A stretch of 64,000 nt of DNA. Source: Macrostomum lignano (lineage: Eukaryota). Where the stretch lies: contig NIVC01000924.1 of NCBI GenBank assembly GCA_002269645.1, forward strand, positions 62,001-126,000. Reading direction: 5' to 3'. Numbering within the stretch: the stretch's first letter is position 1; each line of letters opens with the position of its first letter. This document shows positions 13,484 through 62,623 of this stretch, piece after piece. Made by a program: the position numbers and the translations under genes. The notes under the pieces are model-generated. The model saw nothing but the letters and a program-made list of their open reading frames with translations. It ran no database searches and had not been told where the DNA came from.

Positions 13484-16400
13484 ATGTCATTCAAGTACAT
13501 TGATTTATCAGAATTTGATCCTCTGTCTATTGCTGACAATGAAACTGCAACTGCACCAGAAACTTTACACTTCCAAGAGGATCATTATGGAGAGCAGCAG
13601 CAGCAGCAGCAGCATTCGCCTCAGGTTTGGCAACCTTTGGAGCAATGTTTAAAGTCATCACCGGCATCGCATAACTCTGATAGCAGCAGCAGCCACATTC
13701 AGCCCCTGGAGCTGCCCAACTCAGCTGACCTGCACTGGTTCTCAGCAGATGCCAATGGCGACAATCAGCGCGAGGCAAAGCGTCATTTACTGCGCGATTA
13801 TTTACGCGAACGTCAACGCGAATTCACCAACTATAGCGATCTGCTGGTCCACTGCGGCACTTGGAATGTCAACAATCAATTTGATGACTCATTCGACCTG
13901 ACCGAATGGCTGCAACCGCCAAGGGATCAGCGAGCGCCGGATATCTATGCATTGGGATTCCAGGAGCTGGACATGTCGCCTCTGAGTAATACCATGACTT
14001 ATATTACTCAGAGATCCGATCGGGAAGAAAAGTGGATCAGACTGTGCCAACGCTGCTTCCCAAGGTTAGCTGGATTCTTGAATTAAAAATGGCCAAAAAT
14101 TGTATTAAAAATTCACCATTAGGCTGTTTATACAGAATTGCCCATAAACTGTTTAAAGAATCGGTCCATGAACTGTTTACGGAATCGCCTATTAACTGTT
14201 TATATAATCGCCCTTTAAACAGATTAAAGAATCGCATATAAACTGTTTACAGAATCGCCCATAAACTGTTTCCATATAATCGCCCCATAGACTGTTTAAA
14301 GAATCGCCCATAAAATGTATATATATTCCCTCATAAACTGTTTAAATTATCGCCCATAAACTGTTTGAAAAATCGCCTATGAAATGTTTAGATATTTATC
14401 CCATAAACTGTTTAAAGAATCGCTCATAAACTGTTTACAGAATCGCCAATAAACTGTTTAGATATATTCACCCCATGAACTGTTTAGATATATTCACCCC
14501 ATAAACTGTTTACAGAATCGCCCATAAACTGTTTAGATATTCCCCCATAAACTGTTTACAGAATCGCCCATAAACTGTTTAGATATTCCCCCATAAACTG
14601 TTTACAGAATCGCCCATAAACTGTTTAGATATTCCCCCATAAACTGTTTACAGAATCGCCCATAAACTGTTTAGATATTCCCCATAAACTGTTTACAGAA
14701 TCGCCCATAAACTGTTTAGATATTCCACCATAAACTGTTTACAGAATCGCCCATAAACTGTTTAGATATTCCCCATAAACTGTTTACAGAATCGCCCATA
14801 AACTGTTTAGATATTCCCCCATAAACTGTTTACAGAATCGCCCATAAACTGTTTAGATATTCCCCCATAAACTGTTTACAGAATCGCCCATAAACTGTTT
14901 AGATATTCCCCCATAAACTGTTTACAGAATCGCCCATAAAATGTTTAGATATTCCCCCATAAACTGTTTACAGAATCGCCCATAAACTGTTTAGATATTC
15001 ACCCCATAAACTGTTTACAGAATAGCCCCATAAATGGTTTACAAAATCGCCAAGCTGAAAATAAACCTTGAAACGTTTATCTCTATCTCGCAGCTCGCAC
15101 TGCTACAGCATAGTGAAGACAGTACGCCTGCTCTCAACATTCCTGCTCGTGGCAGCAAAAGACTCGCTACGCAACGACATACACAGCATCCGGTTCGGCA
15201 CCCAAGCCACCGGTCTGATGGGTTTTGGTCCTAACAAAGGCGGAACCGCGGTCCGATTTCAACTGGGCGATACTCAGTTCACCTTTGTGAACTGCCACCT
15301 GGCAGCCGGTGAAGATAAGCTGGAGAATCGCTACAACGATTTTCGCGATATTCAACAGAAACTAAAGCTGATGTTTGAGGGCACGGCTGGTCGCTACGAA
15401 CTGCTTAGTCACGTTGGCGACGCGGTTGGAAGTCACGTGACTTTTTTCTTTGGCGATTTAAATTTCCGACTGTCTGGCGTCAGTAAAGAGGCTGTGGAGG
15501 CCAGACTGTTTGACACGGAGCGACCGGGTGCTGTGGAAGAGCTGCTGGCCCGCCACGATGAGCTCAGGAGGGCCAGGGCTCAGGCTCGATATGGGAATAT
15601 CTTTCTGGTGAGTTCAGAATTACTTAAAGTATTTCAATTATTTGTTTTAGCTAAATTTTTCATAAGACTGGCTATTGATGCTTGATAAACTGAGGGTTGA
15701 TGAACTGAGGGTTGATAAACTGAGGGTTGATGAACTGAGGGTTGATAAACTGAGGGTTGATAAACTGAGGGTTGATAAACTGAGGGTTAATAAACTGAGG
15801 AGCGATAAACCGAGGGTTAATAAACTGAGGGGTTAATAAACTGAGGGGTTAATAAACTGAGGGTTGATAAGCTGATAGTTGATAAACTGAGGGTTGATAA
15901 ACTGAGGGTTGATATACTGATAGTTAATAAACTGATAGTTGATAAACTGAGGGTTGATGAACTGAGGGTTGATAAACTGATAGTTGATAAACTGAGGGTT
16001 GATAAACTGAGGGTTAATAAACTGAGGATCGATAAACCGAGGGTTAATAAACTGAGGGGTTAATAAACTGAGGGGTTAATAAACTGAGGGTTGATAAACT
16101 GATAGTTGATAAACTGAGGGTTGATAAACTGAGGGTTGATAAACTGAAGGTTGATAAACTGAGGGTTGATAAACTGAGAGTTGATGAACTGAGGGTTGAT
16201 GAACTGAGGGTTGATAAACTGATAGTTGATAAACTGAGGGTTGATAAACTGAGGGTTGATAAACTGAAGGTTGATAAACTGAGGGTTGATAAACTGAGGG
16301 TTGATAAACTGAAGGTTGATAAACTGAGGGTTGATAAACTGAGGGTTGATAAACTGAGGGTTGATAAACTGAAGGTTGATAAACTGAGGGTTGATAAACT

Positions 16401-23994: not shown

Positions 23995-25928
23995 TCAGTA
24001 ATAATCCTCATCCTCATTCTGACCGCCGGCAGTGGCAGCGGCAGACTTGACCACCTCCTGGCTGCTGTACATCTCGGCCAGCTGGGCGGCCGTAGTCGCC
24101 TCCTCTGGCCGTTTGTCCTCGCGGCGGCGAACGAATCTGGGGAATCGGAGGCTGACGCCGCGGCGAGGGTCGGCCAGGCCGATGGCGGCCATGTAGGCGG
24201 GGCTGAGGCTCAGGTCGGCCGCCTTCACCTCCCAGACGATGGCCGGGTCGAACCAGACGTCGGCATTTGAAGCGCCGCCGCAGCGGACGTAGGGCTTCGG
24301 CGCGGCGACCCGGTGCTCGGCCAGGTCGCGGGTGAACGCGTCCAGATCTTCGTCGGAGAAGCCGGTGCCGATTTTGCAGACGGTCTGGTATTCTTCGTCG
24401 TCGGGATTGTAGCAGGCCAACAGGAAGCCCCAAGCTTGCCGGCCCGCTTCCCGGTGCCATGGTAACCACCGACAACCACGAGGTCGAGCGTGTCGCCAAC
24501 ACCGTCGACGTAGTCTTTTTTGAGCTTCAGCCAGCTGTGCGACCTGCGCGCGTTAAATTAATTGATTGATTTGCTTATTAGACTACTTATTAGATAAAGT
24601 TCGCGTGAGTAGGATGAAGAGCTTTGTGTCTAGGAATATTACTGCCAGTATGCGTGATAGGAAAAGCAGTTTAAAATCTGATACAAGCGTAAGAAGTGGA
24701 CACGGTAGATAGATGAGCTCGTAGTAGATCAGGTAAATAAGATAGATGTACATACATATGCTGACACTCATTTTTAGTATATTGGAAGTAGACAAGTTAT
24801 ACAGGTGACAAGTAGACAAGGTAGACAGATGAGAAGTAGACAAGGTAGATAGGTAAAATCAGATAGACAGGTGACAAGGTAGACAGGTGACACGGTAGAC
24901 AAGGTAGACAGGTGACACGGTAGACAAGGTAGACAGGTGACACGGTAGACAGGTGACACGGTAGACAGGGTAGACAGGTGACATGGTAGACAAGGTAGAC
25001 AGGTGACATGGTAGACAAGGTAGACAGGTGACATGGTAGACAAGGTAGACAGGTGACATGGTAGACAAGGTAGACAGGTGACATGGTAGACAAGGTAGAC
25101 AGGTGACATGGTAGACAAGGTAGACAGGTGACATGGTAGACAAGGTAGACAGGTGACACGGTAGACAGGCAATCCAGTGTTAAGTGTCTTGCTTAAGGGC
25201 ACAAATGGTTCCAAGTGGGTCGCGAATCGAACCTCCGACCTTTCAGTCGTAAGTCCGACGCTCTAACCACTAGGCTACAACCCCCAGGTAGTAGACCAGG
25301 TAGACAGGTGAGAAATAGACAAGGTAGACACATGATACTGTGCGCGCACCTCTTAGCAATCTCGTAGGTAGCCTCAGTGTCCAAGGCTTTAAGCATGAGT
25401 CCTTCGCAGTTTCCTCGAATAGCTTCATCCAGGAAGACCTGAATCTCCTCGGTGTCGGAGCAGTCCTGCCATTTGGCCAGGGCGAAGTGGCCCGCCTGCT
25501 CTGTCTCGGCAAAGTTGAACCCATCGCGCAGAACTTGGCGTCGCTGCCTTAATGATTTCTCAACCAGCGACTCGCCGTTGTAGTACAGAATGTCGAACAC
25601 AAACACGCACACCTGGACTTTGATTGAGCCCGCGTCAGCGTCTTTTCGCTTCCGGGTTGTTAGCACCTGGGGGGGGGTGCAGAAGGTGGAGTTTCTAAAG
25701 TCAAAAAAGGTATTAGCTAGTATGTAGCGCCACGAAAGTCAGGGTCACTGTGCACCCTGTGAGAGTGTGCGATTGCGTGCCTGCGTGCTGTATTGGCTGT
25801 CTGTCTGTCTGTCAGTCTGTCTGTCTGTGTGTCTGTGTGTCTGTCTGTCTATCTGTCTGTCATCTATCTGTCTGTCTGCCTGCCTGCCTGCCTATCTGTC
25901 TCTGTCTGTCTGTCTGTCTGCCTGCCTA

Positions 25929-25979
<51 letters not shown>

Positions 25980-28900
25980 GCCTATCCGTCTTTCTGTCTG
26001 TCTGTCTGTCCAGCTCACCTGGAAAGGCAGTATCTGTCGCTTCTCCGTATCGAAGGCCACAGCTTCAGCATCCAATATGAAGTCAACCGGCTCACGGCCA
26101 GCCAGCAGGTCGGGCACCCTGGCGGCGATGTCCGGGTACTTGCTGGTGTTGTTCTCCTGATTGCGCGAGTACACCCGAACGGAGCCGTCTGACAGACGGT
26201 GAATCTGAGCGCGCTCGCCGTCGTATTTGAACTCGCAGGTGAAGGCGCCGACGCTTTCGAATCGTTTGAGCACCTCTGCGACGCCGCGGGTTGGATGGGC
26301 CAGCATGGGCTTGAGGGGCAGGCCGACTTGAAGCTGACAGCGAGACAGAAGGCCGGACAAGTCGCCGGAGCTGCAGGGGGTCGAGTATGGAGTTCGAGCA
26401 TTGTTATTGATCGAAACAAGATCAAATTGGCAAATCAATTTCATCTTTTCTACGTTTTTTAACAATAAAAAATTGTTATGGAAAACCAGGTGGCTCTCGT
26501 AGCTTTGCCGATAGTAATAAACTTGTTTTCTGAGAACGCAATACGTTAAATTTTCAAGAATTATTTTAATTAATTAAAAATTCTTTTTCTAAGAAAACAC
26601 TTCCCATTTTCTAATAAACCTCTTCCTGTTTTCTAAGAATCCACTTCTCGTTTTCTAAGAATCCACTTCCTATTGTCTTATAAACCACTTCTCGTTTTCT
26701 AAGAATCCACTTCCCATTTTCTAATAAACCTCTTCCTGTTTTCTAAGAATCCACTTCCCGTTTTCTAAGAATCCACTTCCCGTTTTCTAAGAATCCACTT
26801 CCCGTTTTCTAAGAATCCACTTCCCGTTTTCTAAGAATCCACTTCCCGTTTTCTAATAAACCACTTTCCGTTTTCTAAGAATCCACTTTCCGTTTTCTAA
26901 TAAACCACTTTCCGTTTTCTAAGAATCCAATTACCGTTTTCTAAGAATCCACTTCCCGTTTTCTAATAAACCACTTTCCGTTTTCTAAGAATCCACTTCC
27001 CGTTTTTTAATAAACCACTTTCCGTTTTCTAAGAATCCACTTCCCGTTTTCTAATAAACCACTTCCCGTTTTCTAAGAATCCACTTTCCGTTTGCTAAGA
27101 AACCACTGTTGTACTTTTGTTTTCTAAGAAACGGTTTAATTGTTTTCCAAGATCTCATCCATTAGACCCTCCACAGAAACTTCTTAAACCAATAGTCCCG
27201 CTTTCTAAGAATTCTGTTTTAACGTCTAAGAATTCAAATGCCTTAAACAGGCTCACCAGTCTTCATCCCGAGTCTCCTCAAGCAGAGCGGCAACCAGCAA
27301 GTCATAATTGGGGCAGCGGCAGTAGGCGGTCCGCACTAGCAGAGCCGCTTCGTCTTGGCGTCGTTTCCAAGAATCCGCAGATTGTCCACGCGAAGCGTCC
27401 GGAGTTTTCAAATTCGGCGACCGGACAAAAGCATGGCCGAGAGCGGACAGGACGGAGAGCTCGGCCAGGCCGATTCTGAGACGACCGGACAAAGATCGGA
27501 TGAGGTATTTGGCTTCGCACTGGCGACAGGAGACTAGCAGGGATTGAATTTTTGACACCTGCGGGTTTTGTAAGAAACTTTGATGTGACAATTAACCACC
27601 ACAAATAGTCAACTCTATTACTAGCTGTGAGCCTACATTAGATACCACAGATGAGTAATTAGCTACCAAAGATACCACAGCTGAGTAATTAGCTACCAAA
27701 GATACCACAGCTGAGTAATTAGCTACCAAAGATACCACAGGTAGATAATTAGCTACCATAGATACCACAGGTAGATAATTAGCTACCATAGATACCACAG
27801 CTGAGTAATTAGCTACCAAAGATACCACAGCTGAGTAATTAGCTACCAAAGATACCACAGCTGAGTAATTAGCTACCAAAGATACCACAGGTAGATAATT
27901 AGCTACCATAGATACCACAGCTGAGTAATTAGCTACCAAAGATACCACAGGTAGATAATTAGCTACCATAGATACCACAGGTAGATAATTAGCTACCATA
28001 GATACCACAGGTAGATAATTAGCTACCATAGATACCACAGGTAGATAATTAGCTACCATAGATACCACAGGTAGATAATTAGCTACCATAGATACCACAG
28101 CTGAGTAATTAGCTACCAAAGATATCACAGGTAGATAATTAGCTACGATGGATACCACAGGTAGATGATTAGCTACGATGGATACCACAGGTAGATACTC
28201 GTAATTAGCTACCATATAGATACCACAGGTAGATGATTAGCTACGATGGATACCACAAGTAGATAATTAGCTATCAAAGTTACTGGTAGGTGTTAAGCAC
28301 CTTCTTCTGCTGCGCGGCATTCCCAGAGAGATCGGCCACCTCGCGTAGCCGCTGAAATACGCCGGCAACAGTCAGAGGTTTCGGCTGGCACATCACAGCT
28401 TGACGCGAACGTAGCGACTCGCTCACTGCGCCAAGATCGCCGACAACTTGAGCACGTTGGCGAATTTTATCTACAGTAGAGCCGGTGCTCAAAGCCATGG
28501 CTTTTATCAGCACGGAGTCACCGACGCCCAGTTCAACAGCCTCGTAAGCTGGCGCCAACTGATTCAAGCACAGATAGACGCACGGCAGCAAATCTTTAGG
28601 GCTGAGCAGACGAACTGAACGAAGAAAATTGCATAGCAACTCTAAGATTCTTAACCGGCCAGGCGTGGCCTCGATGGCTTCGAATGTTTTGGCCAGAGCC
28701 AAGTAGGGCACCGGCTGGCCGCTCGACCAGCTCGCATCCTCTATGGGATCGTAGCGAGCTTTGCCGGGATTATAACCCGATTCTTCCTTCGGCTGCTGCT
28801 CAGACGGCGCTTCAGCTGCTGTCTTCTTCTCCTGGTCCGATTTTTCAACCTCTTTTACTTCGGCGGCGATTTTGTTTGCCTGCTTCTTTTCCGGCTTACT

Positions 28901-29626
28901 TGTTGCAGATTTTTTCCTGGCTACTTTCGATTTTGCGTCAGATTTCGGTTTTGTGTCAGAGTTCGGTTTTGTGTCAGAGTTCGGTTTTGTGTCAGATTTC
29001 GGTTTTGTGTCAGATTTCGACGGTTTCGGTTTCAATTTAGATTTGCTTTTATCGGAAGCAGATTCGGAAGCGGCAGATTCGGAAGATGACGAGGAGGAAA
29101 TCATTCGGCGACGCTTGGCAGGCGGAGATGGAGAATCCTGTTGTTGCTGAGGCGACGACAAAGACTCATCGTTGGATTCAGAATCAGAGGAACCGGACTC
29201 AGACTCAGCCTTCTTTCGCTTGTTCCGCTTGTCTTGTTTATCTGGCCTATCTAAAGACAATTTATTTTCTTTCTTAATTGTCGAAGTCTCCGCTTTCGAA
29301 GTCGGCGACTTCACCTTCGCGTCGGTAGTAGTCTTTGTTGGCGGTGTGGTCGATAAAGGGCGTCGAGTACTATCGGTGATAATAGTACTACTATCTGACT
29401 GTGCCGCAGAAGAGGCGGCAGTTTTCGAGAAGAAAGAAGTGATGGAACGTTGTTGCTGCTTCTGGCTTCCATTTTGCTGTTGCGGCATTGCGCAGGGCGA
29501 GTTTAAGATAGATAGTATTGACGTTGTTCGTACAAACAATGGGCTTGAGCAATGAAGGAAAACAGCCGACACACCTTTCTGACGTATTAAGGATGGCGCT
29601 AGTAACGTTAATAAACGAGGTAGCAT
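23995..29626 (-). CDS. LIG1: DNA ligase I; exons 29626-28301, 27558-27257, 26370-26019, 25666-25350, 24543-23995; 1-nt frameshift at 24428-24431; about 948 aa if corrected
   Basis: PIP box [28 protein letters not shown], adenylation motif [26 protein letters not shown] and OB-fold SLRFPRF. Exon lengths sum to one base short of a multiple of 3. Confidence 0.93.
24800..25165. repeat. 25-bp minisatellite (GTAGACAAGGTAGACAGGTGACATG) in LIG1 intron 4
   Basis: Period 25 (25021/25046). Confidence 0.95.
25168..25285 (-). mobile_element. tRNA-derived SINE fragment in LIG1 intron 4
   Basis: Minus strand GGGGGTTGTAGCCTAGTGGTTAGAGCGTCGGAC...GGTTCGATTC (A and B boxes), then a non-tRNA body GTGCCCTTAAGCAAGACACTTAAC resembling a widespread SINE central domain (recalled, not searched). 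Confidence 0.8.
25796..26010 (-). repeat. (GACA)n microsatellite (CTGT on +) in LIG1 intron 3
   Basis: Read directly. Confidence 0.97.
26575..27100. repeat. 22-bp minisatellite (TTTTCTAAGAATCCACTTCCCG) in LIG1 intron 2
   Basis: Period 22. Confidence 0.95.
27640..28275. repeat. 30-bp minisatellite (GATACCACAG[GTAGATA/CTGAGTA]ATTAGCTACCA[T/A]A) in LIG1 intron 1
   Basis: Period 30, two interspersed variants. Confidence 0.96.
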
Positions 29627-29759
29627 GAAATGTGCCGCGTTACGTTTAAGATTTTCATGATAATATAAAGCAATTACTTTACACCAATTACTTTACTTTA
29701 CACTTTTTCTCCCATTAACAATGTATTTTTACACCAAATGTGCACACATTCCAATATTT

Positions 29760-31042
29760 AAGACCAACTAGCTCTATACCAAACTAGACCAAACACATTC
29801 CAGAACCTATGACCAACTAACTGTACACATATTCTAGAATCTATGACCAACTACACACATTCCTGAATCTATGACCAACGAAATGTACACACATTCCTGA
29901 ATCTATGACCAGCTAACTGTACACACATTCCAGAATCTATGACCAACTAAATGTACACACATTCCAGAATCTATGACCAGCTAACTGTACACACAATCTT
30001 TAACCTATGACCAACTAGCTGTACACACATTCTAGAACCTATGACCAACTAACTGTACACATATTCTAGAATCTATGACCAACTACACACATTCCTGAAT
30101 CTATGACCAACGAAATGTACACACATTCCAGAATCTATGAACAGCTAACTGTACACACATTACAGAATCTATGACCAACTAAATGTACACACATTCCAGA
30201 ATCTATGACCAGCTAACTGTACACACATTCCAGAATCTATGACCAGCTAACTGTACACAACACATTCCAGAATCTATGACCAACTAGCTGTACACACATT
30301 CTAGAATCTATGACCAGCTAACTGTACACACATTCTAGAATCTATGACCAGCTAACTGTACACAACACATTCCAGAATCTATGACCAACTAGCTGTACAC
30401 ACATTCTAGAATCTATGACCAACTAGCTGTACACACATTCTAGAATCTATGACCAACTAGCTGTACACACATTCTAGAATCTATGACCAACTAGCTGTAC
30501 ACACATTCTAGAACCTATGACCAACTAACTGTACACACATTCTAGAACCTATGACCAACTAGCTGTACACACATTCTAGAACCTATGACCAACTAACTGT
30601 ACACACATTCTAGAACCTATGACCAACTAGCTGTACACACATTCTAGAATCTATGACCAACTAACTGTACACACATTCTAGAATCTATGACCAACTAACT
30701 GTACACACATTCTAGAACCTATGATCAACTAACTGTACACACATTCTAGAACCTATGACCAACTAGCTGTACACACATTCTAGAACCTATGACCAACTAA
30801 CTGTACACACATTCTAGAATCTATGACCAACTAACTGTACACACATTCTAGAACCTATGACCAACTAGCTGTACACACATTCTAGAACCTATGACCAACT
30901 AACTGTACACACATTCTAGAATCTATGACCAACTAACTGTACACACATTCTAGAACCTATGACCAACTAGCTGTACACACATTCTAGAACCTATGACCAA
31001 CTAACTGTACACACATTCTAGAACCTATGACCAACTAACTCT
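29760..31042. repeat. 34-bp minisatellite (CTATGACCAACTAACTGTACACACATTCTAGAAC) between RGS and LIG1
   Basis: Period 34 (30661/30695). Confidence 0.96.
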
Positions 31043-31614
31043 ACATCATAGGTAACAGAAAAACATGTAGACAAATATACGTGTACTTATTAAATTGTGA
31101 CATTTATTAAATGACTTCAAAGGAAGGGGTGCGCTGATCTATTTGCAGAAATCCGTGAATTCACAATTTTCAGGTATTTAAGCAAAGCAAACACAAGGCT
31201 AACATTAAAAATGACTTGGACCAATTGACTAAGAAGTTAGCTTCAAATAAATGAATATATAGATAATAAATATCAACACTTATAAGAAATACTAAACTGG
31301 ATGCATTCAGACTAGAAGATAATGTGGATTAGATATGCTTTAAATGATATAAAAAACTATATATCTAAATTTGCATTTATAAAACTTGCCCCGCAAAGCT
31401 CTGGGATTCGTTAGCGACTGATATAATAGGGAAGAGAAACAGGGGGTTAAAAATACTCGCAACTTGCAATGAGTAACTGTTTTGTGAAATAAAATCAACT
31501 CAGAATACACCGATGCTAAAGCGATGATGGTGATATTCAATAATCAGGAAAATATGCAGAAGACACTTTATGAACGCTTTTTACATTCAATCTGTTTAAA
31601 TATTAAGCGAAAAG

Positions 31615-32265
31615 TGGTTAATCCGCTAGATTTCCACACAGGTTAATCCGCTAGATTTCCACACAGGTTAATCCGGTTGATTGCCACACACGTTAATCTG
31701 CGGGATTTCCACAGTTTAATCCGCAGGATTTCCACAGGTTAATTCGCAGGATTTCCACAGGTTAATCCACTGGATTTCCACAGGTTATTCCGCTGGATTT
31801 CCACACAGGTTAATCCGGTTGATTGCCACACACGTTAATCTGCGGGATTTCCACAGTTTAATCCGCAGGACTTCCACAGGTTAATTCACAGGTTAATTCG
31901 CAGGATTTCCACACAGGTTAATCCGCAGGATTTCCACAGGTTATTCCGCAGGATTTCCTCAGGTTAATCTGAGGGATTTCCACACAGGTTAATCTGCAGG
32001 ATTTCCACACAGGTTAATCTGCAGGATTTCCACACAGGTTAATCCGCAGGATTTCCACACAGGTTAATCCGCAGGATTTCCTCAGGTTAATCTGAGGGAT
32101 TTCCACACAGGTTAATCTGCAGGATTTCCACAGGTTAATCTGCAGGATTTCCACACAGGTTAATCTGAGGGATTTCCACACAGGTTAATCTGCAGGATTT
32201 CCACAGGTTAATCCGCTGGATTTCCACAGGTTAATCCGCAGGATTTCCACACAGGTCAATCCACA
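31615..32265. repeat. 23-25-bp minisatellite (CAGGTTAATCCGCAGGATTTCCACA)
   Basis: Period 25 (32041/32066). Confidence 0.94.
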
Positions 32266-32844
32266 GAATTTACGCTTCGTTAATCCCCTCTCCCACAACG
32301 GATTTAACCCGACCCGAGCAAAATAATAATTAAATACAAAAATATTGCGACCTGTGTGTTTGTTTAGTTGTTTGTTGCAAAAACTGAAAAAAAGTAGAAA
32401 AAATCGACTAGATAAACAAGTATCAGGTGACTATTTAAACAAAATGTATACAAAATACAAAAGGCTGAAGGTTAGGCCATTATACAATGGCATGCTTCAA
32501 GCAAAATGAAACGAATTCAAATTAACAGAGTGCATGCAATTAGCTAACTAAACGATTAGGAAATCACTACATACTCTCAGAAGCATAATGATTTGCATAG
32601 ACCAAAACAGGGCATTGGGCGTCGGAGGGCATAATAAGTACATTGGATGTGTACTTAAAAGACTTTTATCACAATATGAAACGTTGTGACAGTTAATCTA
32701 GATTATCGCTGTAAAACTAACGACCAATATATCCATATTTAGTCCTAGATTTTAGTATATAGGATATAGTTTTAGTCTTTAGAGTTATGAAAAAGAAAGT
32801 GCTAACGACTCATTTAGAATACTTGCCCAGATTTGGAATCTTTG

Positions 32845-33685
32845 GGATCTGATTTGGAAGTGGGGATCTGAGACTTTTTGAGTTGGGGATATGGACTTCT
32901 TGAGCTGGGGATCTGGGACTTTTTGAGTTGGGGATTTGGGACTTCTCTTGAGTTGGGGATCTGGGACTTTTTGAGTTGGGGATTTGGGACACTTGAGTTG
33001 GGATCTGGACTTTTTGAGTCGGGGATTTGGACTTTTTGAGTTGGAAATCTGGGATTCTTTGAGTTGGGGATTTGGGATTATTTGAGTTGGAGATCTGGGA
33101 CTTTTTGAGTTGGGGATCTGGGATTCTTTGAATAGGGGATTAGGGACTTTTTGAGTTGGGGATCTGGACTTTTTAAGTTGGGGATCTGGACTTTTTGAGT
33201 TGGGGATCTGGACTTTTTGAGTTGGGGATCTGGACTTTTTGAGTTGGGGATCTGGGATTCTTTGAATAGGGGATCAGGGACTTTTTGAGTTGGGGATATG
33301 GACTTCTTGAGCTGGGGATCTGGACTTCTTGAGTTGACGATCTGGACTTCTTGAGTTGGGGATCTGGGACTTTTTAAGTTGGGGATCTGGGGCTGTTTGG
33401 GTTGGGGATCTGGGACTTTTTGAGTTGGGATCTGGGGCTGTTTGGGTTGGGAATCTGGGACTTTTTGAGTTGGGGATTTGGGACTTTTGAGTTGGGATCT
33501 GGACTTTTTGAGTTGGGGATCTGGACTTTTTGAGTTGGGGATCTGGACTTTTTGAGTTGGAAATCTGGGATTCTTAGAGTTGGGGATTTGGGATTATTTG
33601 AGTTGGAGATCTGGGACTTTTGAGTTGGGGATCTGGGATTCTAAGAATAGGGGATCAGGGACTTTTTGAGTTGGGGATCTGCGAC
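32845..33685. repeat. 22-24-bp minisatellite (GGGATCTGG[G]ACTTTTTGAGTTG) 3' of RGS
   Basis: Read directly. Confidence 0.94.
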
Positions 33686-33958
33686 TTGAGGTCATAGGAT
33701 TCTGATCCCATGGTATTTTTTACATTTCGAATCATAATCATAAGCTAAAAAGTAAAAAATTAGGAATTGGGATAAATAAATCCCATTTGACTATTCTTTA
33801 TTTTAATTTCTGCGAATTAAATTCTGTAGACTAACAAAATTATTACCTATATCTTTAAGCCAATACAGACGAAAATCATTTTGACTAAAAAATCAAAATA
33901 TAAAACAAATACAACTCAATCAAAAGCTACTTAAAGTAGTGCTCGAGTGCACTTTTGT

Positions 33959-34818
33959 TTAATTTGCGGCGTCGGTCCCTTCGGCCCCGGGAATTGTTAC
34001 GGCGTCGACAGTTCCAGCGTCCCTCGATCGTCTGGCGGCCGCAGCGGACGCCGTGTTGACGTTAACGGCGTTGGTCGCCGCGTCGCTACTTGACAATCGT
34101 TGCTGCTTTTTGCTGCTTAATTTTTTCTTACCACTTGCTAACAATTGCCGGTAGAAGTCTGAGCGCAGGAATCTGCCGTAGGAGTCGGACTTCATCAGCT
34201 GAAATATGTGCTCCTCGGCCGCTTCGAATGCGTAACGATCAGCTGAGGCGGCTGTAGCGCTGGACATCCGTTTTCGGACAGCTTCGGCCACCGGGCCGGC
34301 CACGTTGACCGGCTCCGTAGCGTCCGGTCCAAGGAAGGTGTCGTAGATCCGATTGACCTCCTTGTGTACCTGACTGGCCGGGGCGTGGCGCAACCGTTGG
34401 CAGGCCTCCCAGAAGGCCAAATTCTCGGCGCTAACCTCTTTTAGTAGCCATTTCTCGAATTCCTGCCGGCCAGCCGGGTCGCGCAGCAGCTCGTGAATGC
34501 TGAAGCCCCAGCGCTTCACCCGCCTAGCCGGGACGTCCCGGGTTCGACGCTCAGATTCCCAATAGTCGGCGCTGTCCGATACCCACGGATTCTGGCTCTG
34601 GTCGGGCAGGCCGCCGCCAATGAATGCGTCAAATTCGGCATACTGCTGATAGTAGCATATGGCGCTCTCGGCCGCTTTGGACACTTTCACGCGACTGAGA
34701 GGGGGCGGGCGTTTGGAATCGGTGCCGCGATTGCCTCATTTCTGGTATACGAACTGGGCCTCACTGTCTTAGTGTCTGTCTGTCTGTCTGTCTTAGTGTC
34801 TGTCTGTCTGTCTTAGTG

Positions 34819-34871
<53 letters not shown>

Positions 34872-37800
34872 TAGTGTCTGTCTGTCTTAGTGTCTGTCTG
34901 TCTTAGTGTCTGTCTGTCTGTCTTAGTGTCTGTCTGTCTTAGTGTCTGTCTGTCTTAGTGTCTGTCTGTCTTAGTGTCTGTCTGTCTGTCTTAGTGTCTG
35001 TCTGTCTGTCTTAGTGTCTGTCTGTCTGTCTTAGTGTCTGTCTTAGTGTCTGTCTGGCTGTCTGTCTGTCTGTCTGTCAGCCGGTCTGTCACCTGAGACT
35101 AACTCACCGCCTAGCCAGTGCCTGCCGCAGTTTGTCAGCCTTCGCGGCTGGCTCACACGGCTCCACGGGACTGAGCCGGCCGCTCGGTATGGGGAAGGTG
35201 GCGGGCCTGGTGGCCACCTTCTTTGGCCGTTTAGCCCGGCACAGCTTGCGCATGTCGACCTCCGTGGCCACGACTGCGCCAGGCGGCGGCCTGTAGAGCA
35301 GCCAGAAGCCGCGCTCCTGACTCTCCAGCACCATGCGCTCGAGCCGTTCCAGCTTCCTGCACAGGTTGAGAGTGGCGGATAGAATGATTAATTAGCGTGT
35401 CTGTGGTGGTGTCTTTTGCAGTATCCGTTGTAGTGTCTGTGGTTGTGTCTGTGGTAGTGTCTAGTAGTGTCTGTGGTAGTGTCTGGTAGTGTCTGGTAGT
35501 GTCTGGTAGTGTCTGTTGTAGTGTCTGTTGTAGTGCCTGTGGTAGTGTCTGCTGTAGTGTCTGTGGTAGTGTATGTTGTAGTGCCTGTGGTAGTGTCTGG
35601 TAGTGTCTGTGGTAGTGTCTGGTAGTGTCTGTGGTAGTGTCTGGTAGTGTCTGTTGTAGTGTCTGTTGTAGTGCTTGTGGTAGAGTCTGTGGTAGTGTCT
35701 GGTAGTGTCTGTTGTAGTGTCTGTGGTAGTGTCTGTTGTAGTGCTTGTGGTAGTGTCTGGTAGTGTCTGTGGTAGTGTCTGTGGTAGTGTCTGTGGTAGT
35801 GTCTGGTAGTGCCTGTGGTAGTGCCTGTGGTAGTGTCTGTGGTAGTGTCTGTGGTAGTGTCTGTTGTAGTGTCTGTTGTAGTGCCTGTGCTAGTGCCTGT
35901 AGTAGTGTCTGTGGTAGTGTCTGTGGTAGTGTCTGTGGTAGTGTCTGTGGTAGTGTCTGTTGTAGTGTCTGTTGTAGTGCCTGTGGTAGTGTCTGTTGTA
36001 GTGCCTGTGGTAGTGTCTGTGGTAGTGTCTGTGGTAGTGTCTGGTAGTGCCTGTGGTAGTGCCTGTGGTAGTGTCTGTGGTAGTGTCTGTTGTAGTGCCT
36101 GTGCTAGTGTCTGTTGCAGTGCCTGTTGTAGTGTCTTTGGTAGTGTCTGTTGTAGTGCCTGTGGTAGTGTCTGTTGTAGTGTCTGTGGTAGTGTCTGGTA
36201 GTGCCTGTGGTAGTGCCTGTGGTAGTGTCTGTGGTAGTGTCTGTTGTAGTGCCTGTGCTAGTGTCTGTTGCAGTGCCTGTTGTAGTGTCTTTGGTAGTGT
36301 CTGTTGTAGTGCCTGTGGTAGTGTCTGTTGTAGTGTCTGTGGTAGTGTCTGGTAGTGTCTGTTGTAGTGTCTGTTCTAGTGTCTGGTAGTGTCTGTTGTA
36401 GTGCTTGTGGTAGTGCCTGTGGTAGTATCTGTGGTAGTGTCTGGTAGTGTCTGTGGTAGTGTCTGGTAGTGCCTGTGGTTGTGTCTGTTGCAGTGTCTGT
36501 TGTAGTGCCTCTTGGTGTCTGTTGTGTGTCCTAGTGTGTTTCAGTGTCAAACTTGTTGTCTGTGAATGTCGCTATGTATTAACAATATAATCCACGTGGT
36601 ATATTTGCAATTGAACACCGAAACACACACATACGCAATTTGCACTTTAGTCGCCCTAACTAAAGAGAAATAAAGGAAGTTACTCTAAAAAATTCAAACT
36701 AATATCTCTGCCACATTTGCTTGACAGACGAAAATCCTCTACTAAAAAATTTACAGACCGCTCGTAAGCAGAACAGAGGGCACTAAAAGCACAGCTGCTA
36801 CCCGTAAATGCACAGAACAATTTTATGTATTTAGGAATTAGAAAATTATTTTCAAAGCTGTCCGCTGCGTGACTAACGGGCCGGTCCATTGTTCCGGACT
36901 GCTGGCCCATGATAAGCGCAGAGGCGCCGCTGTCTCTCTTGCAACCCAAACTGCCAACTCCGATGCGACACTGTGAGAACTGCTGTCAATATCAGAGCTC
37001 AACTGGGTGCGAATATGCCTCTGATGTCTGCATATTGAGCAGCTGGAGGCGCAACTACTGATAATGTAAGCTGAGTGGCTGCTGCACCTGGGTCTGGGAG
37101 GGCGGTGGCTGAGCCTGGGATTTGGGAGGGCGGTGGCTGAGCCTGGGGTCTGGGAGGGCGGTGGCTGAGCCTGGGATTAGGGAGGGCGGTGGCTGAGCCT
37201 GGGGTCTGGGAGGGCGGTGGCTGAGCCTGGGATTTGGGAGGGCGGTGGCTGAGCCTGGGGTCTGGGAGGGCGGTGGCTGAGCCTGGGGTCTGGGAGGGCG
37301 GTGGCTGAGCCTGGGGTCTGTGAGGGCGGTGGCTGAGCCTGGGAGGGTAGTGGCTGAGCCTTGAGTCTGGGAGGGCGGTGGCTGAGCCTTGGGTCTGGGA
37401 GGGCGGTGGCTGAGCCTTGGGTCTGGGAGGGCGGTGGCTGAGCCTTGAGTCTGGGAGGGTGGTGGTTGAGCCTGGGGTCTGGGAGGGCGGTGGCTGAGCC
37501 TTGGGTCTGGGAGGGCAGTGGCTGAGCCTGGGAGGGTAGTGGCTGAGCCTTGAGTCTGGGAGGGCGGTGGCTGAGCCTGGGAGGGTAGTGGCTGAGCCTT
37601 GAGTCTGGGAGGGCGGTGGCTGAGCCTGGGAGGGTAGTGGCTGAGCCTTGAGTCTGGGAGGGCGGTGGCTGAGCCTTGGGTCTGGGAGGGTGGTGGCTGA
37701 GCCTTGAGTCTGGGAGGGCAGTGGCTGAGCCTGGGAGGGTAGTGGCTGAGCCTTGAGTCTGGGAGGGTGGTGGTTGAGCCTGGGGTCTGGGAGGGCGGTG

Positions 37801-38793
37801 GCTGAGCCTTGGGTCTGGGAGGGCGGTGGCTGAGCCTGGGGTCTGGGAGGGCGGTGGCTGAGCCTGGGGTCTGGGAGGGTGGTGGCTGAGCCTTGGGTCT
37901 GGGAGGGTGGTGGCTGAGCCTTGGGTCTGAGAGGGCGGTGGCTGAGCCTGGGAGGGTAGTGGCTGAGCCTTGAGTCTGGGAGGGCGGTGGCTGAGCCTGG
38001 GGTCTGGGAGGGCGGTGGCTGAGCCTGGGGTCTGGGAGGGCGGTGGCTGAGCCTGGGAGGGTAGTGGCTGAGCCTTGGGTCTGGGAGGGCGGTGGCTGAG
38101 CCTGGGGTCTGGGAGGGCGGTGGCTAAGCCTGGAGTCTGGGACGGTGGCGGTGGCCCAATAATTTGGCCTCATTTACGTGGAACTAAGATGATAGAGCTT
38201 GGTAATTCTACAATCCAAAAGATCCATTGTAACAAAAATAAAGCCGAAATCAGCTTTACCTATCAACCTTAGCCTCGGCCTCCGCCTGCAGGTAGATAAA
38301 CTCCCATTTGTGAGACAGTAGGCGCTGCAGCCTGGCCAAATTCTCAGCCTCATAATTGGCCAATTCCAATCGCTGCTTATTGAGCAGTGTTCGCTTGCAC
38401 AGGTAGACAGCATAGTCAGTGTTGTCCAGCCGATCTGGTGATTTACTGGGCCACAGGCAGGGCGTTTGAAATCGATAATAGGAAGAATCGTTGCGTACAA
38501 CCAGAGCCGTGCCTTCGACTGGGATGATGTAACCGTGAGCTGCCAGCATGCTGGCCACGTGACAGGCCTCCTGCGGTAATGGTCGGATCGGATAGTCATT
38601 AGTTAGCTAGTAGCTCGCATGTGTTTAGCAAATTGAATAAAAATTGACTGCTGCTACTGGTAGTAGCACTACCTACCTAGCCCAAGGCACTACCAACACT
38701 AATATTACTAAAACTACAACAAATATTACTACTAATAGTCCAAGTAATACTGCTAATAGTACACTACTAGCACTACTACTACTGCTACTACTG

Positions 38794-38831
<38 letters not shown>

Positions 38832-40316
38832 GTCTCCAAGTGAGAGGGAGTGAGAGGGAGTGAGAGGAAGCGAGAGTGAGAGAGTGAGAGGAAGCGAGAG
38901 TGAGAGAGTGAGAGGAAGCGAGAGTGAGAGGGACTGAGAGGAATCGAGAGGGAGTGACGGAGAGAGTGAGGGAGTGACGGAGAGTGAGAGAGAGTGACGG
39001 AGAGTGAGAGGGAGTGACGGAGAGTGAGAGGGAGTGACGGAGAGTGAGAGGGAGTGACGGAGAGTGAGAGGGAGTGACGGAGAGTGAGAGGGAGTGACGG
39101 AGAGTGAGAGGGAGTGAGAGGAAGCGAGAGGGAGTGAGATGGAGTGAGAGGAAGCGAGAGTGAGAGGGAGTGAGAGGGAGTGAGATGGAGTGAGAGGAAG
39201 CGAGAGTGAGAGGGAGTGAGAGGAAGCGAGAGGGAGTGAGAGGAAGCGAGAGGGAGTGAGATGGAGTGAGAGGAAGCGAGAGGGAGTGAGAGGGAGTGAG
39301 AGGAAGCGAGAGTGAGAGGGAGTGAGAGGAAGCGAGAGGGAGTGAGATGGAGTGAGAGGAAGCGAGAGTGAGAGGGAGTGAGAGGAAGCGAGAGGGAGTG
39401 AGATGGAGTGAGAGGAAGCGAGAGGGAGTGAGAGGGAGTGAGAGGAAGCGAGAGTGAGAGGGAGTGAGAGGAAGCGAGAGTGAGAGGGAGTGAGAGGAAG
39501 CGAGAGTGAGAGGGAGTGAGAGGAAGCGAGAGGGAGTGAGATGGAGTGAGAGGAAGCGAGAGGGAGTGAGAGGAAGCGAGAGTGAGAGAGAGTGAGAGGA
39601 AGCGAGAGGGAGTGAAAGTGAGAGGAAGCGAGAGGGAGTGAGAGGGAGTGAGAGGAAGCGAGAGGGAGTGAGAGGGAGTGAGAGGAAGCGAGAGTGAGAG
39701 AGAGTGAGAGGAAGCGAGAGTGAGAGAGAGTGAGAGGAAGCGAGAGGGAGTGACGGAGAGTGAGAGGGAGTGAGAGGAAGCGATCGAGGGAGTGAGAGGA
39801 AGCGAGAGGGAGTGAGAGGAAGCGAGAGTGAGAGAGAGTGAGAGGAAGCGAGAGTGAGAGAGAGTGAGAGGAAGCGAGAGGGAGTGACGGAGAGTGAGAG
39901 GGAGTGAGAGGAAGCGATCGAGGGAGTGAGAGGAAGCGAGAGGGAGTGACGGAGAGCGTAGAGGGAAAGACTCGATATGCCCTAACCTGAGCATCCTCTG
40001 CATCGGTGTTACGCAGAAGCCAGCCGCACAGCTCCGACCCAGTGAAACAAGACGGCTGACAGGACATAAAGGATTTAACAGTGCGCACAGAGATGCCTGC
40101 GTCTTCCTGTTGTAGCCGTTCTAATAGTCGCTCTAGTCGGGACCATTGGTAAGCGTTGGGATGCGGCGGGCGGCCAGCCTCAGTGGTGACTGGTGCTGTT
40201 TTTGCTTTAGCGTGTCTGGCGTGGTGTCGCATTACTGAGGTGGATGTTGCACTGCTGCTGCTGCTGCTGCCAGCACTGCCGGAGCTGCAGGCAGCCTGAG
40301 TCTGTTGCTGCTGCAT
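33959..40316 (-). CDS. RGS7: R7-family regulator of G-protein signalling (RGS6/7, EGL-10-like; DEP-DHEX-GGL-RGS); exons 40316-39987, 38570-38260, 35356-35108, 34694-33959; about 541 aa
   Basis: DEP (GISVRTVKSFMS...FTGSELCGWL, AAHGYIIPV, YYRFQTP), DHEX (NTDYAVYLCKR, SQERGFW), GGL (RVKVSKAAES...EFDAF) and RGS box (WGFSIHELLRDPAG, SAENLAFWEAC, LMKSDSYGRFLRS). Phases consistent; the 5' end could extend further. Confidence 0.92.
34765..35078 (-). repeat. (GACA)n-type microsatellite with TTAGTGTCTG interruptions in RGS intron 3
   Basis: Read directly. Confidence 0.95.
35400..36530. repeat. 10/12-bp minisatellite (GTAGTGTCTG[TG/TT]) in RGS intron 2
   Basis: Read directly. Confidence 0.96.
37075..38145. 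repeat. G-rich 28/21-bp minisatellite (CTGGGAGGGCGGTGGCTGAGCCTGGGGT) in RGS intron 2
   Basis: Period 28 (37141/37169) with a 21-bp deletion variant. Confidence 0.96.
38760..39957. repeat. (ACT)n microsatellite followed by a 1.1-kb GA-rich polypurine compound repeat in RGS intron 1
   Basis: ACT run about 38760-38830; GAGAGGAAGC/GAGAGGGAGT/GACGGAGAGT modules 38842-39957. Confidence 0.95.
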
Positions 40317-61050: not shown

Positions 61051-61537
61051 GTTAAAAGTTTCTATAAGTTATACCCTAGAGAACTGCACTAAATTGCTCA
61101 CAACTCTTGAATGCCTTCTATACACTACTTTGCATCTTGGACTCTGGCTTACTATAATAGAACTAGGATTTACCTAGTCATGATCATTATTATAAACAAA
61201 GAGATTAATTAGGCATTTATTTATTTAGGCAAATCATACATGTACAACCCCCTGATTTACACTGGCCATGCAATTTACTTTTTGACCAAAAATGCAACTT
61301 ACCTATGAAAGAAACCCTGAAGCAAATTATGTTACCCTTGCCACTGTGTTGGTGGTAAGGGCGTTTAAACTGCAAGGGGAGGGGCTCGCTTGGCTGGGGC
61401 GGGTGCGTGCAGGGTGGCGTGTGCTGCGGGGGGCGGGGGGTCGCGGGGGTGCTAGCTTGATTTCTATTTAGTCCGGTCCTTTGCTTGTTCGCCGTGCGTT
61501 CGTGTTTGCTCAGATTTTTTTCTCAGCCACAATCAAT

Positions 61538-62623
61538 ATGGCCACCTCTAGTCAGCTGCAATCAGTCACCAATCTGAGCGTGCCTCAACTAAAGACGGCA
61601 TTGCAAGCGCGCAAATTACCAACAAAAGGTAGCAAGGCTGCCCTACGTACTTGTCTGTGCGACGCGATTCTCAACAAGCGTCTAGCTGCTGACACCGCGA
61701 ACAGGACTTCCCACAGGGAGCCACCGTGGGATTCTGACGGCTCGTCCAATGGAGGGAGCAGCCGGCGGTCCAAGGGGGGTGGCACCTCTTTGGGTGGCGC
61801 GGCTCTGGATGAGGAGATCCAGCTCACCCGATGGCGCATTGAACTGCTAAGGCTGCAGAAAGAAGAGGCGGAGCTGCAACGGTCGGTGGATAAGGCACCA
61901 GATAATCGCGGTAAGCTACCAGAATTTTTGAGCCAGTCTGCTTGCGCTGAGTCTGATAGGTGGTCCAATGATAGTGAACTTGATGCTGCTATTTTTGCTC
62001 CAAGCAACGCTAGAGTTATATCCGGGTGGCTGCTTCGTATTTGCGACTTCATTGATGCCCCTGGCCAGGCTGACGAGCTTCTTGCGCAGGGTGAGACAGC
62101 CAAGCAGAATCTCAAGAGCAGTAGACCAAAATCTGTAGACTCTGTGACAGTCGGCCAATGGATTTCTGCCAATGCTAAAATTATGTATGCCATGCTGCAA
62201 TCCGGACAGCTAGCGTCTCACGACACCGATAGTGAGCCAAAAAGTCTCTTGGACTACTTGCAGCACGTTATCCACATCGGCGATTTGCTTGATGGGGGGT
62301 ACGACTGGCAAGTCCTTCTTCGTTATGATGACGACCTGCATAAGTTCCAGCATGCAAACGCCTCCAAGTGGTCCCAGCCGCCTTTGTCTTTGATTTGTAA
62401 GCACCTTATGGCCCCAAAGAACCTTCATAGTCGGCAAGCCAGCCAGACTGGCCGCGGAGGCCGCCAACAATTCGCTTCGCGAGGCCAAGCGGTCTGTGGA
62501 CTGTTTAACAGCGCTACCGGATGTCAGAGAGACACCTGCAACTATCTGCACTGCTGTCGGATTTGTGGTGGCTCACATGCTGCTGCTAGCCACACCAACC
62601 ATGCTAATCAAGCAAAAAACTGA
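61538..62623 (+). CDS. Gag-like ORF1 with N-terminal SAP motif and C-terminal zinc-finger-like cluster (361 aa from ATG 61538)
   Basis: LSVPQLKTALQARKLPTKGSKAAL (SAP-like); WQVLLRYDDDL; CGLFNSATGCQRDTCNYLHCCRICGGSH. Confidence 0.75.
   Translation: MATSSQLQSVTNLSVPQLKTALQARKLPTKGSKAALRTCLCDAILNKRLAADTANRTSHREPPWDSDGSSNGGSSRRSKGGGTSLGGAALDEEIQLTRWRIELLRLQKEEAELQRSVDKAPDNRGKLPEFLSQSACAESDRWSNDSELDAAIFAPSNARVISGWLLRICDFIDAPGQADELLAQGETAKQNLKSSRPKSVDSVTVGQWISANAKIMYAMLQSGQLASHDTDSEPKSLLDYLQHVIHIGDLLDGGYDWQVLLRYDDDLHKFQHANASKWSQPPLSLICKHLMAPKNLHSRQASQTGRGGRQQFASRGQAVCGLFNSATGCQRDTCNYLHCCRICGGSHAAASHTNHANQAKN

Follow-up and report, generated by a model that had tools for sequence, protein, structure and literature searches.

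Two in-frame start codons and a candidate mitochondrial presequence in the DNA ligase I gene of the flatworm Macrostomum lignano

Animal mitochondria cannot do without a DNA ligase. The enzyme given in textbooks is LIG3, an answer taken from vertebrates, and the distribution of LIG3 across eukaryotes is patchy; a ligase of any kind can serve mitochondria if it is given a targeting sequence. The question raised by the locus described here is whether the DNA ligase I gene (LIG1) of the flatworm Macrostomum lignano encodes both a nuclear and a mitochondrial enzyme. The gene is located on a stretch of 64,000 nucleotides (nt) of contig NIVC01000924.1 (NCBI GenBank assembly GCA_002269645.1, positions 62,001 to 126,000 of the forward strand), which as a whole is called the window below. 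All positions given are those of the window, and all LIG1 features are on its minus strand. An earlier reading of the sequence (the original prediction) had proposed that LIG1 has two in-frame ATGs, that the first of them adds an extension resembling a mitochondrial presequence in front of the PCNA-binding motif (PIP box), and that this metazoan LIG1 doubles as the mitochondrial ligase. Judging from the features of the DNA and from the comparison with other species, we consider it probable, at roughly 60%, that a single mRNA gives rise to both a nuclear and a mitochondrial LIG1 by leaky scanning.

The gene is DNA ligase I, the LIG1/Cdc9 orthologue of M. lignano, as the original prediction had it. 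With relatives as guides, we assembled a five-exon model of 948 amino acids. The coding part of exon 1 (28301-29626) ends at the donor site AAG/GTGCTT and is followed by exon 2 (27257-27558), exon 3 (26019-26370), exon 4 (25350-25666) and exon 5, which extends to the stop codon (23995-24543). The open frame that begins at the ATG at 29626 runs for 448 codons and stops in the first intron. Pfam identified the DNA-binding, adenylation and OB-fold domains in the model, in this order (PF04675, 9.5e-47; PF01068, 3.1e-63; PF04679, 2.9e-23), and found no zf-PARP, BRCT or any further domain in the 948 residues. Compared with the human ligases, the model scored 766 bits against LIG1, 153 against LIG3 and 124 against LIG4. 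The catalytic lysine motif K-Y-D-G-x-R is present in exon 3 as KYDGERAQ (residues 591-598, positions 26228-26205). Two basic clusters, KRNKRKK (residues 133-139, 29230-29210) and AKRRRM (residues 170-175, 29119-29102), resemble nuclear localisation signals by composition only.

The top protein match is an entry named "DNA ligase 1, Macrostomum lignano" (A0A1I8HIP1), which is 98% identical to the model and differs from it by 1 residue across the aligned parts. The frame of exon 5 is broken at a run of 4 Gs (24431-24428), where the entry (GKLGGFLL) requires 5, and one G was inserted there in our model. This run is probably a homopolymer assembly error, and it could be a true lesion in one gene copy. 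The database entry is itself incomplete: it is truncated at its N-terminus, beginning at residue 238 of our model, and it is mis-spliced, so that exon 1 lacks its final 13 residues and exon 2 its final ones, and exon 3 is missing altogether. As the entry contains neither the N-terminus nor the exon with the catalytic lysine, the arrangement of two starts described below is invisible in the current annotation.

Two ATGs in the same frame are present at the 5' end of LIG1. ATG1 (29624-29626) has the weak context catttcATGc, with T at -3 and C at +4, and ATG2 (29486-29488), the presumed start of the nuclear isoform, has the better context tgcgcaATGc, with G at -3. Upstream, the frame is closed by a TAA at 29695-29693, so that no earlier in-frame ATG precedes ATG1. 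The 135 nt between the two starts are devoid of ATGs in all frames, where 1.8 would be expected and the probability of finding none is about 0.16. At the DNA level, the gene pairs a weaker first start with a better second one in the same frame, no other ATG intervening. The 46 codons from ATG1 to Ala46 (29489-29626) specify an N-terminal extension, the candidate mitochondrial presequence, which contains 0 Asp or Glu, 10 Leu, 7 Ser, 3 Thr, 4 Pro, 3 Arg, 1 Lys and 1 His and has a net charge of +4. The Gln of the PIP box QRSITSFF (residues 59-66, 29429-29452) is located 12 residues past Met47, the residue encoded by ATG2. The box matches the PIP consensus Q-x-x-[ILM]-x-x-F-F, and the same motif is found in several LIG1 relatives. 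The positions of both ATGs and their -3 bases had been predicted exactly to the base, and so had the lack of acidic residues and the distance of 12 residues to the PIP box; the description of the extension as rich in Leu, Ser and Arg fits the first two residues and was somewhat overstated for Arg.

How easily could such a leader be formed by chance? When all 1864 ATGs on both strands of the whole window were considered, 253 (13.6%) were found to be followed by 46 open codons, and 25 of these 253 open frames (10%) are free of acidic residues. Taken singly, these features are not rare. Only 4 of the 1864 ATGs (0.2%), ATG1 of LIG1 included, are followed by an acid-free open stretch of this length with a net charge of at least +3, and the features of the leader in combination exceed what is expected by chance. 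The extension is unique within the window; it lies outside the neighbouring minisatellite and is not a repeat. Folding of the leader RNA was unremarkable (z = 0.84).

The same layout recurs in other invertebrates. An exhaustive protein search with the exon-1 open reading frame (ORF) provided a set of LIG1 relatives, including 47 with an initial Met and a recognisable PIP box. In most of these 47 proteins the PIP box is within the first few residues. A minority of LIG1 proteins, however, have an acid-poor, basic extension of 29 to 49 residues, followed by a Met and then by the PIP box. These are found in the trematodes Paragonimus westermani (KAF8566375.1, 49 residues, with the degenerate PIP box QKSIANSS) and Dicrocoelium dendriticum (CAH8504730.1, 29 residues), the whipworm Trichuris suis, a nematode (KFD45518.1, 32 residues), the moth Anticarsia gemmatalis (XP_075985103.1, 40 residues), the butterfly Pararge aegeria (XP_039765458.1, 45 residues) and the tardigrade Paramacrobiotus metropolitanus (XP_055334441.1, 38 residues). 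Trichuris is the weakest case, as its extension contains 3 acidic residues and has a net charge of +1. The LIG1 model of a third trematode, Echinostoma caproni, begins at the PIP box, so that the extension is present in two of the three trematodes. The Dicrocoelium model excises a tiny intron inside the extension; read without splicing, the frame likewise stays open as far as the second Met (47 codons), so that the extension listed for Dicrocoelium is provisional.

For five of these six species (all but Pararge) the genomic DNA was read at both starts. The start contexts and the intervening ATGs had played no part in choosing the species. In all five, and also in Macrostomum, ATG1 has a pyrimidine at -3 and ATG2 has a purine there. 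The interval between the two starts is free of ATGs in every frame in four of the five species, or in five of six when Macrostomum is counted. The chance of having no intervening ATG is about 0.12-0.18 per species, and that of observing this in at least five of six is, by our arithmetic, about 3 in 10,000. The extensions of the lepidopteran pair, Anticarsia and Pararge, share the pattern MNT...RIVL, and the extension is therefore conserved as protein there. A dual-start LIG1 may thus exist in an insect order, the Lepidoptera; we found no discussion of this in the literature examined. The invertebrate cases differ from that of Macrostomum in several respects. Their second Met is 1-2 residues before the Gln of the PIP box, whereas it is 12 residues before it in Macrostomum, and their extensions are richer in Arg, share no sequence with the Macrostomum extension and cannot be aligned with it. 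In our reading, a layout for leaky scanning has recurred under selection in invertebrate LIG1 genes, and the Macrostomum gene fits it. The rarity of a dual-role metazoan LIG1 that the original prediction had implied was overstated, as the layout occurs in several invertebrate phyla; its proposal that this LIG1 acts as the mitochondrial ligase gains from a layout that is that of dual-targeted genes and recurs in invertebrates, and loses from the codon usage described below, which is like that of non-coding DNA.

Genes with this layout are known. The LIG1 genes of yeast and plants and the LIG3 gene of vertebrates all produce mitochondrial and nuclear forms of the enzyme through alternative in-frame starts. 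A close likeness is to CDC9 of Saccharomyces cerevisiae, where one LIG1 gene with two in-frame AUGs provides the mitochondrial and nuclear ligases of yeast. The stretch between the two AUGs of CDC9 is reportedly a short, acid-free presequence rich in Arg, Leu and Ser, and the second Met is said to lie about 12 residues before the PIP box. The CDC9 extension has about 23 residues, whereas that of the flatworm has 46 and shows no sequence similarity to it; moreover, the yeast case is experimentally proven and that of the flatworm is predicted from DNA. In vertebrate LIG3, an upstream AUG, used in about 10% of initiations, adds the mitochondrial signal, and a downstream AUG starts the nuclear enzyme. 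This gene differs from the flatworm gene in being a separate paralogue with zf-PARP and BRCT domains, neither of which was found in flatworm LIG1. The LIG1 gene of Arabidopsis thaliana likewise uses alternative starts for a mitochondrial and a nuclear isoform (Sunderland et al. 2006, as cited in another paper); the localisation of the plant isoforms is experimental, whereas the flatworm case is a prediction. Flatworm LIG1 is probably a further case of the same scheme.

Under leaky scanning, the two isoforms would be produced as follows. A minority of ribosomes would start at AUG1, which has a poor context and probably stands behind a very short leader. The product would be a precursor whose first 35-46 residues or so act as a mitochondrial presequence, and which would be imported and cleaved to give a mitochondrial DNA ligase. 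Most ribosomes would bypass AUG1, traverse the 135 AUG-free nt and start at AUG2, yielding the replicative ligase of the nucleus, whose PIP box is close to the N-terminus and followed by the basic, putative localisation clusters. We infer that AUG1 is part of the mRNA, that translation begins there and that its product is imported and cleaved.

The presequence features of the extension were scored with simple, crude home-made measures. It contains three motifs of the phi-x-x-phi-phi type, the kind bound by TOM20 (LLTLL, VSAVF and ILSIL), and a cleavage site of the R-2 type, RTT/S, at Arg33; R-3 and R-10 cleavage sites were not found in the 46 residues. The hydrophobic moment reaches its maximum of 0.47 in residues 1-13 (11-residue window). 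The extension would be compatible with a presequence by these measures, though not striking.

Several observations weigh against a translated mitochondrial leader. The traits just described are moderate (3 Arg, 4 Pro, a hydrophobic moment of 0.47), and the extension has a hydrophobic core of 10 residues which a predictor might pass as a signal peptide. The synonymous codon usage of the extension resembles that of non-coding DNA: its log-likelihood ratio is -13.8 (reference windows: -17 +/- 9 where non-coding, +18 +/- 9 where coding), a score below that of all 16 held-out windows of LIG1, the lowest of which has -0.4. The G+C content at third codon positions (GC3) is 0.37 as against 0.59, and TTA and CTA, both rare in LIG1, make up 8 of the 10 Leu codons. 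The held-out windows, counted from the 5' end, score 2.1, 7.3, 6.7, 10.7 and -0.4 and then rise up to about 30; the low values of the 5'-most windows soften the contrast without removing it. This codon usage fits either an untranslated stretch or a young, weakly constrained leader. As to conservation, the exhaustive search with the exon-1 ORF retrieved no Macrostomum relative, only distant LIG1s, and the comparative cases are gene models, that is, predictions and not experiments. Finally, about 30-39% of M. lignano genes are trans-spliced (38.8% in one source), especially conserved genes and genes of stem cells.

The chief rival explanation is that the extension is not part of the protein at all. 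Transcription would then begin, or a spliced leader be added, downstream of ATG1, the 46 open codons would be a chance reading of promoter or outron, LIG1 would be nuclear only, and LIG3 or another enzyme would work in the mitochondria. The codon usage and GC3 speak for it, as do the frequency of trans-splicing in this species and the fact that the open frame and its freedom from acidic residues are each unexceptional. The combination of features is rare, however, and five other invertebrate LIG1 genes have the same layout with the same asymmetry of start contexts. The stretch is free of ATGs, as a scanned leader would be, and the region around it provides two further arguments, namely that the composition becomes exon-like upstream and not downstream of ATG1, and that no consensus acceptor is present in or near the stretch. 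We regard this explanation as possible but rather doubtful.

The unique sequence upstream of ATG1 is short. It is bounded by a 34-bp minisatellite of 37 copies (29793-31045), degenerate units of which reach to about 29733, leaving only about 105 nt. At about 15 nt upstream of ATG1 (around 29640), the G+C content rises from 0.28 to 0.43 and the observed/expected ratio of CpG from 0.5 to 1.46; the ratio is 1.2 in the exon and 0.18 in the intron. Some 25-30 nt upstream of this point there is a TATA-like element, TTTATATTA (29661-29669). If it set the start of transcription, the 5' leader would be very short and leaky scanning would therefore be favoured. The element is only a consensus match in an A+T-rich stretch, and we gave it no weight. 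The promoter-element scan upstream of LIG1 did not find an E2F consensus. The sole other ATG nearby, at 29658, is out of frame, stands in a good context with A at -3 and opens an upstream ORF (uORF) of 16 codons (29608-29658) that runs across ATG1 and stops 120 nt before ATG2. If transcription begins upstream of 29658, this uORF might divert initiation from ATG1 to ATG2.

The spliced leader of M. lignano has 35 nt and ends in ATG, and the trans-splice acceptor motif in this species is [T/C]TNCAG (PMC8629364). No such acceptor is present inside the extension or within 200 nt upstream of ATG1. The indirect evidence, that is, the composition and the absence of a consensus acceptor, leans towards inclusion of ATG1 in the mRNA. 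A protein search with the N-terminal 145 residues gave no match even at E <= 10, and exact look-ups of the 448-residue exon-1 ORF and of A0A1I8HIP1 matched no contigs.

The gene might also be a decaying duplicate in a polyploid genome, so that its 5' features would say nothing about function. This would account for the 1-bp frameshift in the last exon (24431-24428), and M. lignano is described as a hidden polyploid (PMC10468722). Yet the frameshift is the sole defect in 948 codons and its homopolymer position is typical of errors in long-read assembly, while all splice sites are intact and a single residue separates the model from A0A1I8HIP1; we hold this explanation to be very unlikely.

Still less credit, though only slightly, is due to a variant in which trans-splicing within the extension replaces leaky scanning or adds to it. 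The only CAG acceptor-like site in the extension, acgtCAG/AAAGG (29578-29584, with the junction at 29579/29578), falls exactly on the boundary between the LIG1-frame codons for Gln16 and Lys17, and the upstream sequence has 64% pyrimidines. Trans-splicing there would put the terminal ATG of the spliced leader in frame, as the start of a shorter leader. The hexamer CGTCAG, however, misfits the acceptor motif, an in-frame placement is expected by chance one time in three, and the shortened leader would be deprived of residues 1-13, the most amphipathic part. Equally improbable is an extension that is translated but not mitochondrial, being a signal-peptide-like segment, a membrane anchor or a neutral N-terminal tail: a hydrophobic core behind a short basic N-terminus and an amphipathicity that is only moderate would suit it, but no role is known for a DNA ligase that is secreted or resides in the ER, a ligase in the organelle is indispensable to all eukaryotes that have mitochondrial DNA, a mitochondrial signal occupies the equivalent position in the LIG1 proteins of yeast and plants and in vertebrate LIG3, and the extensions of the other invertebrates are more Arg-rich.

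As to the surroundings of the gene, the LIG1 introns and the 4.3-kb intergenic region upstream consist largely of minisatellites (the 34-bp unit in 37 copies, and units of 25/48, 23/45 and 30 bp), together with a GACA-type microsatellite. Besides the array next to LIG1 (29793-31045), the repeats lie at 31616-32271, 32861-33687 and 28000-28273, and ORFs derived from repeats are found at 24774-25214 and 25750-26160. The next gene upstream, also on the minus strand (33959-40316), is an RGS gene of the R7 type. Its first exon matches the DEP domain weakly, its last exon encodes GGL and RGS domains, and long repetitive stretches between these exons give spurious ORFs. An operon comprising LIG1 and this RGS gene was considered and is unlikely, because 4.3 kb of minisatellites separates the two genes. 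Elsewhere in the window, the plus-strand ORFs at 13484-15685 and 61481-62623, with an endonuclease/exonuclease/phosphatase family 2 domain (5.5e-27) and a SAP domain, are probably exons of two further genes.

The original prediction had added that LIG3, or its targeting signal, might have been lost. LIG1 genes of species without LIG3 are said to carry predicted mitochondrial leaders. Reviews describe LIG3 as spotty in its distribution across eukaryotes and subject to repeated loss; a targeting signal seems to be present in many LIG3s from outside the vertebrates, and yeast mitochondria use LIG1. On LIG3 in flatworms we found a single second-hand sentence, which counts LIG3 with the genes reported as missing from the planarian Schmidtea mediterranea; the same text claims its presence in Dugesia japonica. 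A protein search with human LIG3 (98% identical to primate LIG3) is uninformative on flatworms, as the best 120 of its 1664 matches are all from vertebrates. We put forward only tentatively, and with more doubt than confidence, the broader view that flatworms and much of the protostomes rely on LIG1, and not on LIG3, as their mitochondrial ligase. In that case, a two-start LIG1 would be ancestral in animals and would have been replaced by LIG3 in vertebrates, and the isoform ratio in M. lignano would be set by leaky scanning and the 16-codon uORF.

The proposal for M. lignano itself is cheap to test, because transgenesis is available in this species and tracks of 5'-end and spliced-leader reads are public. 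If LIG1 does serve both compartments, the solution used by yeast and plants would persist in animals. The six gene models from other invertebrates suggest that a dual-start LIG1 may be common in protostomes, and the breadth of this layout across protostome LIG1 genes may be under-appreciated. A LIG1 with both roles would also bear on a question raised in the literature, namely why the mitochondria of vertebrates depend on LIG3 rather than on LIG1.

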